From Trichosphaerium sp. ATCC 40318 (lineage: Eukaryota; Protista; Tubulinea), in NCBI GenBank assembly GCA_038496445.1, contig JALMLS010000075.1, positions 124,001 to 188,000 of the forward strand: DNA of 64,000 bases, given 5' to 3'. Of this stretch, positions 6,021 to 44,729 are shown one piece after another (the stretch's first letter is position 1; each line of letters opens with the position of its first letter). A model generated the notes under the pieces. The model saw only the letters and a program-made list of their open reading frames with translations, was not told where the DNA came from and searched no databases. A program made the position numbers and the translations under genes.

Positions 6021-7169
6021 ATGGAGGGAAAATACACAAACAATGCTAATCCGAGCATATTTGACCTTGTTGCGCTTCCAAATGAACTAATAGTTCATAT
6101 TCTCAAACAAGGGATTTATACACTTCATTCTGCCCAAACATGTCACTATTTGCGAGATATTGTCCACAACCACGTTGGATATAATGCTATCAGTATTCGC
6201 TGTGTAAGTCAAGTGAACATTCTTTCTGGCAGCCCGTTACTCCTGAATACACCTATTCACGTGCTCTGTCATTCAATACTTGATAAGCACATCAAGATGT
6301 TAGCAGGTGTACATACTATCAACTTAAACACGTGTGAATTGATAACAGATGAGGGTATAAAGGCTTTGGCAGGTGTGCATACAATTGATTTATATGGCAC
6401 AAATGTAACAGATGAAGGTTTGAAGGCGTTGGCAGGAGTACATACAATTGGGTTGTGTCGGTGTGCAGTAACAGATGAAGGCATAAAGGCTTTGGCAGGT
6501 GTACATGAGATTGATGTGTCATGTACAAATGTAACAGATGAAGGTTTGAAGGCGTTGGCTGGCGTACATACTATCAGCATAAACATGTGCGAATTGATAA
6601 CAGATGAAGGTTTAAAGGCTTTGGCAGGTGCGCATACTATAAACTTACATGAGTGTGAGTCAATAACAGATGAGGGCATAAAGGCGTTGGCAGGAGTACA
6701 TACAATTGAATTATCATATACAGATGTAACAGATGAAGGGTTGAAGGCCTTGGCAGGAGTACATACTATAGAACTTGAAGTTTGTGAATTGATAACAGAT
6801 GAAGGCATAAAGGCATTGGCGGGTGTACATACAATTGATTTAGAAAGTACAAACGTAACAGATGAAGGTTTGAAGGCGTTGGCTGGTGTACATACTATTG
6901 ATTTAGAAAGTGAATTGATAACAGATGAAGGTTTAAAGGCATTGGCGGGTGTACATACAATTGATTTAGAAAGTACAAACATAACAGATGAAGGTGTAAA
7001 GGCATTGGCAGGTGTACATGAAATCAATTTATCATACACAAATATAACAGATGAGGGTTTGAAGGCACTGGAGGGTGTTTCTAGAATAATATTGCTTGGT
7101 TGTAATTCAATAACACTTGATTGTATTGCTGCATTGAGAGAGAAAGGATGCACTGTCAAATACCAATAA
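6021..7169 (+). CDS. Intronless F-box-like + leucine-rich-repeat protein (382 aa)
   Basis: N-terminal 'LVALPNELIVHIL' F-box-like motif, then about 11 repeats of GVHTIDLxx(x)xxTDEGLKALA; single uninterrupted ORF. Confidence 0.9.
   Translation: MEGKYTNNANPSIFDLVALPNELIVHILKQGIYTLHSAQTCHYLRDIVHNHVGYNAISIRCVSQVNILSGSPLLLNTPIHVLCHSILDKHIKMLAGVHTINLNTCELITDEGIKALAGVHTIDLYGTNVTDEGLKALAGVHTIGLCRCAVTDEGIKALAGVHEIDVSCTNVTDEGLKALAGVHTISINMCELITDEGLKALAGAHTINLHECESITDEGIKALAGVHTIELSYTDVTDEGLKALAGVHTIELEVCELITDEGIKALAGVHTIDLESTNVTDEGLKALAGVHTIDLESELITDEGLKALAGVHTIDLESTNITDEGVKALAGVHEINLSYTNITDEGLKALEGVSRIILLGCNSITLDCIAALREKGCTVKYQ
6300..7080 (+). repeat. Coding tandem repeat (72/75-nt LRR units)
   Basis: Recurrent 'aacagatgaaggtttgaaggcgttggc(a/t)gg(t/a)gtacatac' with high nucleotide identity between units. 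Confidence 0.95.
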
Positions 7170-36348: not shown

Positions 36349-39300
36349 TTAAGGTCTTGTTGCTATCCAGTATAGTGCATTAGTCTTTGGGTTACCGTTA
36401 TCATACTGGGTCAAGTTTTGTAAATCATTCCAAGCTGTATTTTTATCTAGAATAGCACTGTCCATCAACACGTACCCTCTTGTGAAAAAGAGTCAACAAC
36501 CACGCAAAAAATTCAAGAATAAAACAAGAAAGCAAACACAAAAACACCCTCGTACTTCCAAATATCTGCGATGTTTCCTGATAGTACTCTTGATAAGAAA
36601 CTATATTCATAAGTAACCCATGATGTAGGAGAAAGTAACCACTCTGTTATAGGGGTAAAAGGGAGCATTTGAATGCAATGAATGTATTCCATGTTTGAAC
36701 CGAACCATGTCGCATTATCCACTTTTGTTGACCATAGAATACCAACAATTGGATTAGCAAACTCAGGTGGATATATATCAGAGTTCCTAAATTAATTAAC
36801 ACAAAGTTAGACATAATCGTTTGGTTTGTGACTCGATAGAAAATATCAAATTTTTCTGTGTTTTTTTCACTTTTTGTTCGAATTTGTACGGTTTTATATG
36901 CCAGTATGTCTGAACTGATTGAATCTCTGTAGTCATCAATACACGACCTAAGTCTTCAATGTGTCCTTGATTTGTTGCAAGCCCCCATAAGTAAATCCCG
37001 CTACGCGTCCTTGTTAGGCTTTTTGGGATTGAAAAAAACCACGTGCTAAGTATATGATCAGTTATTTTCTAAGATAGATAAACTATTTTTCAATGTACCT
37101 AGTAGGCATGTACAGCTTCAGATGTTGATTCTTGGTTCTTTGAATCTTCAGAATAAGAGAAAAAAGTAAGAAATAGAACAGGCGTTTTTTTAAATGTTTT
37201 CTAGAACGTACCTGGAAATGTATCTAGTCCATTTGCCCAAGAGTGACCCAAGAACCTTAAAAAAATATTAAAGATCGTTTTTGGAGGTTGATCACGTGCC
37301 AGTTCTTATGTCTTGTTATAGGAAAGTACTCATCGTCTGCAGATGGATTTGCAATATCACGAATAAGTGCATTAACAAAAACAGCATGACTTGATACCCA
37401 TGAAGGATCAAACTTTGCTATTACTGCGGCACTATATATGTAATATCCATAGTGAAAGTCTAAGAGGTATGCATAAAAACAGAGGAGCAAATGACGTCAC
37501 AAATGTTCGCACGATGATCGTTATAATATCCATTTCCGAAATCAGCCGTTCCATCATTTAACCCTCTAGATGTGCATATACCACCCCAAGACTCATCGTA
37601 CATAAATTTATTAACATTGTTACCTTTAAACCAGATCTCAATGGCAGTCTAAACGTAAACATTAGCCAAAGGCAAATGAGTAAAATTACAGGTCGTCTTT
37701 TCGCTTGGTTTACCTTGAGTCGTTCTACCAGGTTGTTTCGTATTGTGACTTCACCGACTTGATCTGCTATTAGTGCTAATCTAGCTGAAGCTGATAGTGT
37801 CTTTCCGTAAGCGTATACATCAACCTAAAGTCAACAAACTTAGAATGTAAAAAACCCAAAACTTGCTGGAACAAAGTAGAGTTCCTGCTCAATAGTAGGC
37901 TATTCTTCAAAAAAAAGCTGAAACAGGTTTTTTATGATTTCGAGACAATGTTGTAATTGAATTATGAAAATAAGAAGGTGTACTGCAGGTTCTATAGGCC
38001 AATTTTGATCATCTTGAAGTGATGTTTTAATATCGTCTATCCTTGTTGGATCAATTGGTCTTGGGGCATCCCATCTAGATATGATGTTAATGTACTTTAT
38101 AATCTATACTCTTAGTATCGTACTGAACATCAGGTAGAGAATATTTAAGCGTCCAAGTGCTTAACAGTCATGTAAGAAAATTTTCAGAATATTGACGTTG
38201 GTTTCGAACAAAATTGCGTGCCTTCCTTGTACGCCTGTCATGTTTCCTTTGATTGTTCTGTATAATTGTCCAACCGATGCTATACTATTAAACAAAGGTA
38301 CTTGGTGAGGTAGAGCCATCATTAGGAGTTTATCAGCCTTTCCTTTTGTTTTCCAGTCAAAAGTCAATGATGCTGTTTTTTCCTATTTTGTTTTAATACA
38401 TTAACATATTCTGATTGTTTTGTACTGCTCTGTTCACTGCGTAAGTGATTTGTCCTCCAGTTGCGTATGTATCTACATGCTCGTCTATAATCTTCGCGCC
38501 ATCGGTTATATCGGGTATCATTGCTAACTGCAGTGTACCGTGCAGTCGTTTAGAAGTTTTTAATCCAACTTTGCAGAAATAAGGAATTTGGAATATTTAA
38601 ATAAGAAAAAAAACGAAACTCGAAAGGGACTGTAAGATACTCTTCTCTTTCTTGCGTACCAATGTTGTCCCACGAGAATTTTGGAGCCTTCCCTTTTGTT
38701 GTATATAGTTTCCATGTCTTTCCACTATTTAACTCTATCTCCAGAACCTTATCTAAACAAGAGATGAACGATTGTACTAACTTTTTAAAAAGGTAACATT
38801 GCGCTTACTTTGAATGCTCGATGGTTGATTTTGTTCATTCACACGGACAATTGCATGCACTGAAGAAAGCTGAGGAGATAGACCATTATATTTCAAGGTG
38901 ATATATGGAGACCCACGAACGATATATGCCTGCATGGTCAGCTCTTGGTGAGAAGTTAATAGATTGTTTCGTAGAATGAAAAACAAAAGAGTATTTGTGT
39001 TGACTAACCATTTGGGTATGTGAACCAGAGAATTGCTATAAAACATACAATTACAGCAACACCAACAATAGATACAATGACAACACAGCAATTTGTTTTT
39101 AAGAAAGCAGCATTAGGAGCGTCCAGGCCTCCACTTAATTTAGAGTACTCCGAATTTGATACCTCAGCATTTTCTTTTTGCCTAAAGAGGAAGTCACAAA
39201 TCACTAGGTGTTGCTTTGTTAAATTGTGAATTATGTATTTAATACCCTATTATTCTCATGGATTTCTCTTTCAGACGTTGTGCAGTTTCATGTTGACCAG

Positions 39301-40774
39301 TTAGCGTGAATGGTATCAACCATAATTTCGCATAAAATATAATCCAAACCAAATACACAAAAAAAAAAGCATAAACAGGCCATATCCCAGCAGTGACACC
39401 CATCATTCTCATACCGTCAGCTTTTAATTCGTTAGGCGATTATTGATCAGTTTGTTTTGCTTAGTGAGTACCTATCTCTACCACACCGGCCAAAGGTGCA
39501 GCAAGGAGTATAATCCAGTAGACAGTTTCGAGCCTTATTATCCATGGATTTTTTGAATAAAAATGTTTCATTATTAGTAGTGCAGCGTTACTTATAGGCA
39601 TCGCAAACGCTAATATAAACAAAGGGTATCCACTGTGTACATTCAGTTAATAAACAAAGGGTTTTCAAGTTGAGGTTTTCAAGAAGAACGAAAAAGGGTG
39701 TAAGCTTTTCGTACAGGATTTTGTGGAAATGGTTAGTCGTTGATACTTGCATATCACCATCAAAAAGTGATGTCAGTGTAAACCCTACAATCGATAATAC
39801 CAAGTTAATGGTTATACAAAGGAAAGAAGCTAAATATCTCCAGTTCCTGTAACAATAAACTGAGTTACTGAAAAAAAAAAACCATAAAATGCTCTTACGC
39901 ATCAAGTGAAGCTGGGTATTTAGCTGTGATGAGTGACAACATAACAAATACTCCCCACCCTAAGAACATTGCAAGTCCATGACCTTTTGGTAAGAGTACT
40001 AGAACAGGTGCTTTAGGACCGATGGTTTACTGTCAAACGAAGATATCTTACCACTTTTGTACCACTCTACCTGTACACCAAGTTCATCATAATCAACAAT
40101 TCTTTTCCCTTCTGCTTGTGAAGCTGTCACACTTATATCTGCTACGAAAATACTTGCGACGTGGGTCCCTGCAGCGAAGCTAACTGAGTCAGTTCATGCG
40201 ATAACAACAGTTAAAGTGTAGTCTTTCAACTGGAAGTATACAATCACGCAAGAGTGTTACATTATATTCATTGGGTACGTCATTGTGTTTCAAAAAAAAA
40301 ATACTAAAAACGTACTAATCAGGGTAACAAACTGTTATGCCCTTAGAGTCTACACGCGTCATATAGGGTAATGGCGCTACATAAGAGCGTTAAAATTACC
40401 TCGTGAACAATCAGGAAAACCCCTTATCAGCGTACAAAACTGCCACTTGGAGTTATCTAACACTGCATTCATCCAAAAAGAATGTGTAGGATAAGGTCTC
40501 TCGATTTTATCCCAAATCCTATTTTATTTGTAATCACGTGCGCGTATATTATTACGTTAACGAGTTACGCACGTTCCTGGTTTTTCAGGATGTGTTCTAT
40601 GAGGAAAAGGAGGGTTTGAAGTTGACACTGGTGTTTTTGACACACCGTGAGGTTTAGATACTATCGCATGTCAGTTACGGTACTATATGAGCTCTTGGTG
40701 GTATTTCTTACCGCAACGTGCTATATATAAAGCGCTTATAAGCGTCAATGATACCCACAAGAGTTTTAAAGCAT
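36349..40774 (-). CDS. GH81 endo-1,3(4)-beta-glucanase with in-frame six-TM cytochrome-b561-like insertion
   Basis: Signal peptide MLLKLLWVSLTLISALYIA; 'PYPTHSFWMN'; 'VRGSPYIT'; 'DFGNGYYNDH', 'FHYGY', 'RHKNWFLGHSWANG', catalytic 'NQESTSEA', 'IQMLPFTP'. Confidence 0.9.
39009..40010 (-). other. Five-exon, 753-nt multi-pass membrane module (cytochrome-b561-like) inside the GH81 gene
   Basis: Exons 40010-39899, 39846-39715, 39632-39472, 39420-39246 and 39181-39009, all GT-AG and in frame; 'HGLAMFLGWGVF', 'HKILGYPLFIL', 'EIADG'. Confidence 0.75.
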
Positions 40775-41235
40775 TGGGGCGCGCCATTATTCAAAATAAT
40801 GATCGTAACGTCACCGGTACAAGACAATATGCCAACGGCTTTAAGTTCTTGGTTAAGGCAATAAATAAAATGTAGACAAGTCGCTTTGATGTGCTACATT
40901 TTAGTTTAATAAATTTCGCCCTCTGAACAGCTTGCACTGCGAATCCATGGTGCATTGCAATATCAGCGTAAGCAGAAACAACAGATGAGCTGTCATCAGA
41001 CTCGTAGGCGCTTGTGCAGAGTCCTAGGCAGAAAGCGGCAAATAGGAAAGAAGGGTGCTTTGAGTTGTAGTAAACGAACAAGTGAAGAGATGGAGAATAC
41101 TTTTATTGTAATAAGGGTAATACAAAAGGAGAGAAACCGCCTTCTAGACTTCGAAATTAAAAAAGTCGAGGGATTGAAAAATTGGGTAAAATTGTGGTGA
41201 ATTCACACCGGTGGTATGTTACGATTGATTTGATC

Positions 41236-42531: not shown

Positions 42532-44729
42532 TTATTCTTTCTTTTTTGATAAACCAACAAGTTGTTCTATTGTTTCTTTAGGTAAAGACCTTGGAAACTC
42601 ATCTGGTTTTGAAAGACTTTCAATCTCAACAAAATCCTTCAAACTACCTCCAAACGAAGCACCATAGTTTATTAATATTTGCTGACCGATTTTTATGTCA
42701 GTTATCGCAATAAAAACTGCCTAATTCAAGTTGTAAGTCCTCAGAAGAAAAAAATTCCCAAAAAGGAAAGTAAGAAAATAGTTGTAAAGTTTTCGGGATT
42801 TTACAACGGGTTCAGATTCGCCTTTGTTCTACATATGTGTAGTATCGTTTTATATAAATATTCAGACGTTATTTTATACATCATTGAGTTAAAATTTAAA
42901 GAGTGACAGAAAAAAAAAGAAAAAAACTGTGACGATTCGTAACATACCTGTTCAGCGCCTTTATCCATTATACATTCCGCTTGTGCATTAGGGACCTTAC
43001 TGTGGTTAGCCATAGCAGCTAGATTTCCTAATTATGAACAGTTAGTGCGTTTTAACGTCAAGGAAAAGTTGTTGTCGAAAAAACGTGTATTGCACGCGTA
43101 AAAACTTCGTAAGAAAATTTTCGATTGACTTGTCAGAAATGTATTGTGTCAAAGTATGTTTCTTACTATACTCTGAAGCATCTAGAATCATATCTTCTAC
43201 GCCAGATGTAACAGCATAAGATCTATTAGGTTGCTCTACATCCTTGACAACACGACCACCATACTTGACAATAAAATCACCTTTTTTAAACTCCTTCTTT
43301 GCGAAAATACCGTAACCGATAACATCGCTTATTTTTGATAACACAAGATTTTCATCACCACTAGTAGTATTCATAATCTTTGTATACTTTTCTCTAAACT
43401 CAGCATCCTTTGACGTTATTTGCATACCAGAAAACAAAAGTTCTTCAATGTACATAAAACTACACAAAGGATGAGGCGTCCATTTAACCTAAACGTTATT
43501 AATAATAAGAAGAACAAGAAGAAGAAATAAAACGTGTTTCAGTGGGACGTTTTCGTTATACTCAGCGTGAGTAAAACACAAAAAAACTTCGTGACGTTTT
43601 TTTTTTTCTTGTATTCTTTTTTTCTTTTTTTCAGAAAACTGTCTGTTCCTTGGTTCCTATTTTTATGAAAAACATAAGTACCTTTAGTGTTTCTTCAAAT
43701 TGCTTCGTTTCCCATGATTCTAGCTCTTTTGTCTCGTTATTGTAGTATGTAATGGAGTGACCTTTAAAGTGGTTTTTTGGTGGTAGCATTTGAAGCATAC
43801 GCGCAAAATCAAGCGGAGTGCCTAGATTACGCTTGATAAGTGAAAAATTAAGCGTTATCAAAAGAAAAACCAAAAAAAAAAACGCGATTAAAAAATTCGC
43901 TGAAATTCGTTTGTTAGACGTCTATCTATTGATTCGTTACCTTCAAATTTATCTTTACCATACATGGTTGCGCCAGCCTTAAGTAGAGCCCACCTATTAG
44001 AATTTAAAAAAATTTCAGAGCCAAAACAAATTCTGATTTTTTGAACAAATTGCTCGTACATGATTGCCACATTCTCAATAAACACTGCCAAATGGAATGG
44101 TGTAAACCCAGTAACGAAATCACCCTTATCTACAAAGTTTTTTCCTCCATTCTCGAGCACTAACTCGACCATCTTGACATTTCCTGTTAATACCTACGCT
44201 ATACGTTTTAATACAAGTCACAATCATGTGGTAGAGCGTACAGCGTATATCAATGCCGATTTATCTTTGCTCAAGTCGCGAATTTCGTCACCTTTTGAAA
44301 GCGTCAGAATAATACAAAAAGAATGAAAACTGGTAGCCAGTGCGTAGTTTTAAAGTACAATGGCGTTATTGAGTGTTTTTCTATTCGGAACCTTCTTGAA
44401 ATGACCTTTGGCTATCCTTCTTTATCTGTAGCTCTGCTGTGTCCACGTCGTTTGATAGTATAAGTTCTTGTATTGTTGTCAAGCCTTCTCCCATTACATT
44501 TTGCATTTCGGTTGAAAGCTTCTTAGCGAACGCTTTTCCTCTCATTACATCAAAATCAAAGCAAGCTAGGAAATAACTGAAGAAATTATGTTAAAAAGCG
44601 TTAATTTTTATCTACATACGATGCCCACTGTGTTGGAGCAGGTTTCTTCGCAATTAATGGGCATTTCTCATCTCCAAGGCATACTTCCTTTAAAAACAAT
44701 TTGTACCACTTTGATTCTGAAAGGGACAT
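42532..44729 (-). CDS. Ankyrin-repeat + SET-domain protein (putative lysine methyltransferase)
   Basis: Ankyrin 'GFTPFHLAV', 'GTPLDFA'; SET 'IGYGIFAKKEFKKGDFIVKYGG', 'LDASEY|RNLAAMANHSKVPNA', 'QILINYG'. Confidence 0.85.

Follow-up and report, generated by a model that had tools for sequence, protein, structure and literature searches.

In a 64,000-nucleotide (nt) stretch of DNA from Trichosphaerium sp. ATCC 40318 (GenBank assembly GCA_038496445.1, contig JALMLS010000075.1, positions 124,001–188,000; hereafter the window, with position 1 as its first letter), the minus-strand coding region 36349–40787 encodes a glycoside hydrolase of family GH81 whose N-terminal domain is interrupted by an in-frame block of six hydrophobic helices. 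The protein consists of a signal peptide, ∼120 GH81 residues, the six-helix block, set into a hairpin turn, and the rest of GH81, and the gene that encodes it is expressed as RNA. We read it as one expressed gene for a membrane-embedded, outward-facing polytopic GH81 endo-beta-1,3-glucanase anchored by a degenerate cytochrome b561-like bundle, and give this reading a probability of about 0.6. The original prediction, made from the DNA letters, had likewise proposed one gene whose GH81 N-domain carries six helices as an in-frame insert, and this insert is present in mature RNA.

The RNA data were four public runs from relatives (X1, X2, X5 and X7; X5 belongs to study P3 and X2 to study P2), used as Logan contigs and mapped to positions 36300–40900. 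Their RNA origin was initially a guess; across the entire gene the contigs pass over introns at canonical splice sites and thus derive from spliced RNA. The RNA-guided gene model, all on the minus strand, is open from an ATG at 40787, and not from position 40774 as first proposed, to a TAA at 36349–36351, and comprises 24 exons that encode 934 residues and the stop. Exon 1 (40712–40787) encodes the signal peptide, with a hydropathy peak at residues 9–27, and an X2 contig spans 40712–40814. Four exons within 40052–40660 (40573–40660, 40436–40518, 40316–40376 and 40052–40179) encode residues 26–145, the opening part of the GH81 N-domain, which ends in the strand VQVEW and the turn YKS; joints 40376/40436 and 40517/40572 are seen in X5. 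The next five exons, A to E, form the inserted cassette. Exon A (39899–39998) encodes a linker and the first transmembrane helix (TM1), exon B (39715–39846) TM2 and an outer loop, exon C (39472–39632) TM3 and TM4, exon D (39246–39420) TM5 and the first half of a 57-residue basic loop, predicted to be cytosolic, and exon E (39009–39181) the remainder of that loop and TM6, which would bring the chain back outside. The exon 38809–38943 then resumes the GH81 N-domain with the strand MQAYI, followed by VRGSPY, and thirteen exons within 36352–38752, with joints in X1, X2 and X5, encode the remaining N-domain, a linker and the C-terminal catalytic domain of GH81.

The five cassette exons, all with GT..AG borders, open frames and no stop, are as proposed from the sequence, between two exons of the GH81 N-domain; their introns measure 41–82 nt. 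The proposed exon sizes (112, 132, 161, 175 and 173 nt) hold as sequence blocks, but exon A is 100 nt long by RNA, so that the insert has 741 rather than 753 nt and 247 rather than 251 codons (residues V146–N392). The difference lies in the acceptor, which had been placed at 40010; RNA contigs of two studies use 39998 instead, 12 nt downstream, and we dropped the former site for the latter. The joint 39998/40052 (GT..AG, minus strand) is present in X5 record 15 and X2 record 11, so that the predicted splice from 40052 into the cassette is borne out, albeit to a different base. X5 record 15 also crosses the A–B joint (39899/39846). X2 record 10 covers 39280–39420, starting exactly at the first base of exon D, and its other 30 nt, which fall in the same depth bin, fit 39472–39501 at the 3′ end of exon C, so that it probably contains the C–D joint 39472/39420. 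At the far end of the cassette, X7 record 17 covers 38805–38944 and has an 11-nt overhang, ATTTGGGTATG, that matches the end of exon E (39010–39020) exactly, which shows that 39009 is joined to 38943, the second junction at which an RNA check had been proposed. The RNA joints therefore cover 40052–A, A–B, E–38943 and, by the fit just described, C–D, whereas B–C and D–E lie outside the contig coverage. In exon E, a 35-nt stretch coding for TM6 (39053–39087) is shared with abundant, unrelated low-complexity transcripts of X2 and X7, which inflate the depth there, and we did not accept that depth as coverage of the exon.

The relatives' RNA differs from the cassette at five positions, four of them synonymous and one exchanging Ile for Val. 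Two are in exon B (a synonymous T>C at 39795, and T>C at 39815, which is I190V) and the three in X2 record 10 are synonymous changes in exon D. The G+C content, its value at third codon positions, codon usage (r = 0.82 against the host exons) and the sizes of the introns of the cassette match those of the rest of the gene, which marks it as an old resident of this genome, where the surrounding eukaryotic DNA has a G+C content of ∼37% and short introns. At that composition a run of 247 stop-free codons has, by our own arithmetic, a chance expectation of ∼3e-8, and together with the six hydropathy peaks this excludes a chance open frame. An artefact, be it a misassembly, a separate nested gene or chance frames in a long intron, could draw on the nature of the evidence, which consists of assembled contigs rather than a DNA run or full-length cDNA; yet canonical splices tie the cassette to the GH81 exons in independent studies, and the stop-free helical frame, the mostly synonymous differences and the host-like codon usage all argue against it. 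We regard this explanation as very improbable and largely refuted.

A different question is whether the cassette is an optional block of exons, with a secreted GH81 as the main product (40052 joined to 38943) and the membrane form minor or conditional. The cassette starts and ends in phase 1, so that its removal keeps the frame, restores the same Glu codon at the junction and recreates the canonical hairpin, and contig assembly tends to lose rare variants. Nevertheless, both contigs across 40052 run into the cassette, the single contig across 38943 runs out of it, and no joint 40052/38943 was found among the contig joints, with the reservation that contigs drop rare variants. Skipping would further require an intron of 1108 nt, about seven times the longest intron of the gene. 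Consistent skipping of 39009–40010, the outcome named at the outset as contrary to the proposal, is therefore not what the transcripts show, and we consider a predominantly secreted product unlikely.

The GH81 identity of both flanks is supported by profile and structure matches. The exon that follows the insert matches PF03639 (Glyco_hydro_81, the N-terminal beta-sandwich) over 38810–38941 (profile positions 121–160) and aligns to residues 157–188 of Rhizomucor miehei RmLam81A (PDB 4K35), and two of the thirteen downstream exons match PF17652 (Glyco_hydro81C, the C-terminal (alpha/alpha)6 catalytic domain) with E-values of 4.5e-16 and 2.8e-18. The first GH81 part aligns to the N-terminal 110–120 residues of homologues at 40–52 bits. 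By phmmer we compared the 934-residue model with 150 GH81 representatives, the nearest of 504. Its closest homologues are ∼43% identical to it, and residues 35–144 and 395–933 align to adjacent stretches of the compared proteins. In 39 full-length homologues the gap between the two flanks amounts to –3 to +6 residues in 36, +16 in two and +87 in one. A continuous N-domain is thus a trait of all GH81 members compared, whereas the protein described here has 247 residues between S145 and E393. In an AlphaFold model of homologue P0009, built on a 36-sequence alignment (predicted local distance difference test score of 89), the insertion site is a four-residue turn between strands 133–137 and 142–146, which confirms the expectation that the flanks form adjacent strands. 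The linkers are short, with about six residues leading to the first helix and about five following the last.

Two homologues also carry long extra stretches. The +87 member, P0060 (L001:3001–5509, from a Schistocerca gregaria assembly record) and the second-best full-length relative, has a low-complexity insert at the same hairpin turn; its contig has a G+C content of 36% and its source is either an insect gene or a microbe in the sample. We rejected P0060 as a hint of an ancestral intron at the hairpin, as its 87-residue insert lies within one long exon. The protein P0017 (937 residues, from Logan) has ∼250 extra residues elsewhere, between positions corresponding to our residues 465 and 494, and these form no hydrophobic helices.

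A multi-helix insert was found in none of the 273 GH81 proteins fetched, a few of which have one terminal helix, and the 120 best matches of a profile search with 36 GH81 sequences carry GH81 domains or carbohydrate-binding modules only. A 76-residue GH81 exon used as a query against 1.84 billion representatives retrieved neither the protein itself nor an orthologue, the best match being 66% identical. The papers searched contain neither a pairing of GH81 and b561 nor a polytopic GH81. The statement that no protein of this architecture had been described therefore stands within these proteins and papers. Searches for relatives of the cassette gave no paralogue in the window (tblastn), no candidate with exon B, and 163 pattern matches but no confirmed case in a metagenome scan with exon D.

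Hydropathy analysis of the insert gives six helices, and the predicted loops contain 13 Lys and Arg residues on the inside versus 3 on the outside, a distribution that fits both ends of the insert being outside. This predicted topology agrees with the earlier argument that a signal peptide and an even number of helices would leave both GH81 parts on the outer face. The long basic loop is the fifth, and the YSKL within its exon E portion may be a sorting signal, although such short motifs are common by chance.

Resemblance to cytochrome b561 was proposed from motifs in the helices. The b561 family is defined by four histidines that bind two haems, the non-cytoplasmic one through H1 and H3 and the cytoplasmic one through H2 and H4. 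DOMON-type members carry these histidines on helices 1–4, and conserved positions include H1+7 and H3+4, each with a small residue, and H1+20, which is basic (PMC10691727). In the insert, His152 (39979–39981, exon A) lies at the outer end of TM1 and His220 (39723–39731, with His218, exon B) at that of TM3, at a spacing of 68 residues (∼70 expected between H1 and H3); they are accompanied by Gly159 (H1+7), Lys172 (H1+20) and Gly224 (H3+4), i.e. by the markers of the outer haem. Composition-preserving shuffles produced this marker set in 1.3e-4 of trials, or 1.4e-3 under lenient rules, in what was a post hoc test. The cytoplasmic half of the pattern is different: the position expected for H2 is Ala185 (in the register given by the Trp at H2–4) and the residues at the usual H3-to-H4 spacing, 36–39 after His220, are Arg256, Leu257, Glu258 and Thr259. 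The residues before the bundle are the GH81 N-domain and not the DOMON domain typical of CYBDOM proteins. An Atlas language-model search with exon A pointed to PF03188 (cytochrome b561) and PF10348 (DUF2427) clusters at 0.79–0.80, a weak lead only, and exons B and C gave unrelated families, which we take as noise. The proposed b561 likeness thus holds for the outer-haem markers and fails for H2, H4 and the Gln at H3+14; single cassette exons gave no match in Pfam or PDB. The insert probably derives from a b561 and may retain at most the outer haem site; we do not class it as a b561.

The catalytic residues are intact. In the 36-sequence alignment 24 of the 25 invariant columns are kept, and Asp693 (exon 37513–37648), the Asp of the NDHH motif, as well as Glu768 and Glu772 (both in exon 37100–37145), the Glu pair of ESTSE, are on columns without variation among the 36 sequences; over 185 sequences the conservation of these columns is at least 98%. 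Asp693 aligns with D475 of RmLam81A, in which we take D475, E553 and E557 to be the catalytic residues. The ESTSE motif has been cited as a signature of GH81 (PMC4176579). The preservation of the catalytic residues favours an enzyme over a sensor or a redox role.

A sensor, as first proposed, would be a non-catalytic or weakly catalytic beta-glucan receptor that signals through the bundle to the 57-residue basic loop. GH81 includes the soybean beta-glucan-binding protein, loop 5 is long and predicted to be cytosolic, and Asn747 (exon 37300–37459) takes the place of a near-invariant Asp (183/185), also in the relatives' RNA. On the other hand, the catalytic Asp, both Glu and almost all invariant columns are intact, and the cytosolic loops showed no signalling domain or motif, which makes a receptor doubtful. 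As for a redox role, the two outer-haem ligands, which are kept together with their Gly and Lys markers, would suit a working single-haem or otherwise redox-active b561 module coupled to glucan processing; however, with H2, H4 and the H3+14 Gln absent there is no path from a cytoplasmic electron donor, there is no profile-level b561 match in single-exon queries, and GH81 hydrolysis needs no redox partner. We consider this less likely than a receptor. The broader proposition, that the insert is a functional module which, by a single outer haem or by the bundle as such, couples the state of GH81 to the cell, as a transmembrane beta-glucan receptor or a redox-gated glucanase, is likewise improbable.

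Several points weigh against the membrane-anchored glucanase that we favour. No full-length transcript was seen, joints B–C and D–E are unobserved in the contigs, and the contigs are compatible with an isoform that skips the cassette and would likewise stay in frame. Two of the four histidines that define b561 are missing, together with the H3+14 Gln, and the cassette had no match in Pfam or PDB, every profile or sequence search for a b561 link having used single exons as queries. Asn747 (37303–37305) is found where 183 of 185 homologues have the Asp that corresponds to D530 of RmLam81A, so that activity may be altered; the codon is the same in the relatives' RNA, and X1 record 4 shows no other letters over 37299–37459. 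Finally, we infer the folding of the split sandwich, the topology, the location and the substrate alike.

If the favoured reading is correct, the signal peptide would bring the first strands of the sandwich outside, the chain would cross the membrane six times and return outside, and the two hairpin strands would pair just above the membrane, where the remaining chain would complete the sandwich. The intact enzyme would then lie flat on the cell-surface or phagosome membrane and there cut beta-1,3-glucan, be it that of prey walls or that of the organism itself. The block most likely descends from the core of a DOMON-type b561, having lost the site for the cytoplasmic haem, and its present role would mainly be that of an anchor.

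Comparison with known systems helps to delimit what is new. The protein shares with GH81 endo-beta-1,3-glucanases such as RmLam81A (4K35), yeast Eng1 and Eng2 and Bacillus halodurans BH0236 the combination of PF03639 and PF17652, the NDHH Asp and the ESTSE Glu; it differs from them in that the sandwich is broken at the hairpin turn by 247 residues and in having Asn for the Asp equivalent to D530. With the FRRS1/SDR2-type b561 core of CYBDOM proteins (Drosophila CG8399, plant CRR/HYP1) it shares the outer His on helices 1 and 3, the Gly and basic markers, and a bundle that directly follows an extracellular beta-sandwich, but it has no H2, H4, H3+14 Gln or DOMON, and an extra sixth helix takes the chain outside. 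Precedent for membrane anchoring comes from single-pass GH81 homologues with N-terminal (P0039, P0135 and P0198) or C-terminal anchors (P0032, P0094 and P0126); these are membrane-tethered in the same sense but have one terminal helix and an unbroken fold, whereas here a six-helix bundle is inside the fold. The plant enzyme KORRIGAN, a membrane-bound GH9 endoglucanase with a single type II helix and active next to cellulose synthase, may serve as a working model of an endo-glucanase kept at the membrane beside a glucan synthase, by analogy only, as family, anchor type and polymer are all different. The soybean beta-glucan elicitor-binding protein has a GH81 fold, binds glucan at the surface and has no membrane helices; in contrast to it, the protein described here keeps the catalytic residues. 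Thus, the GH81 family and its membrane tethering are already known, and the new part is the six-helix bundle threaded through the hairpin.

Some introns of the gene, and the window around it, show further peculiarities. The predicted intron 40180–40315 (136 nt) contains an in-frame TAG and is kept in X5 contigs, which lack two T of a T-run at 40292 within it. At intron 37001–37099 the RNA of X1 and X2 joins ...CCTACTA (37100) to CGGG... (37000), so that the intron begins with GG and not GT; a GT one base further would create an in-frame TAG, and the site is either a GG-AG intron or reflects a one-base difference or error in the window. Introns 37256–37299 and 38160–38221 have GC-AG borders (GCACGT and GCACGC), both backed by RNA joints. 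X1 has two versions of exon 36916–37000, at depths of 20 and 9.7, which differ by four synonymous changes and a C>A at 37000 and represent either two alleles or a close paralogue. The hexamer CACGTG occurs 50 times in the window versus 10.6 expected (largest shuffle, 19); its three copies inside the gene (37040–37045, 37293–37298 and 40535–40540) are all intronic, one of them at a GC donor. Other frames in the window encode leucine-rich repeats with an F-box-like start (6021–7166, plus strand), MORN repeats (12526–13107, plus strand) and a SET domain (43045–43467, minus strand), with no evident tie to the glucanase.

The usual tethers of carbohydrate-active enzymes are terminal helices, lipid anchors or binding modules, and a membrane bundle inside a globular domain is a rare case of domain insertion. 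It raises the question of how an extracellular domain cut in two can fold around such a bundle and, as a phase 1-1 block with host-style introns, also bears on exon-level shuffling in an intron-rich protist; a gene finder would probably call the whole cassette one long intron. In addition, the insert provides a natural b561-like core in which the outer haem may be the only one. For the organism itself, the finding concerns the handling of beta-1,3-glucan by amoebae at their membranes, be it glucan of prey walls or of their own wall or store.

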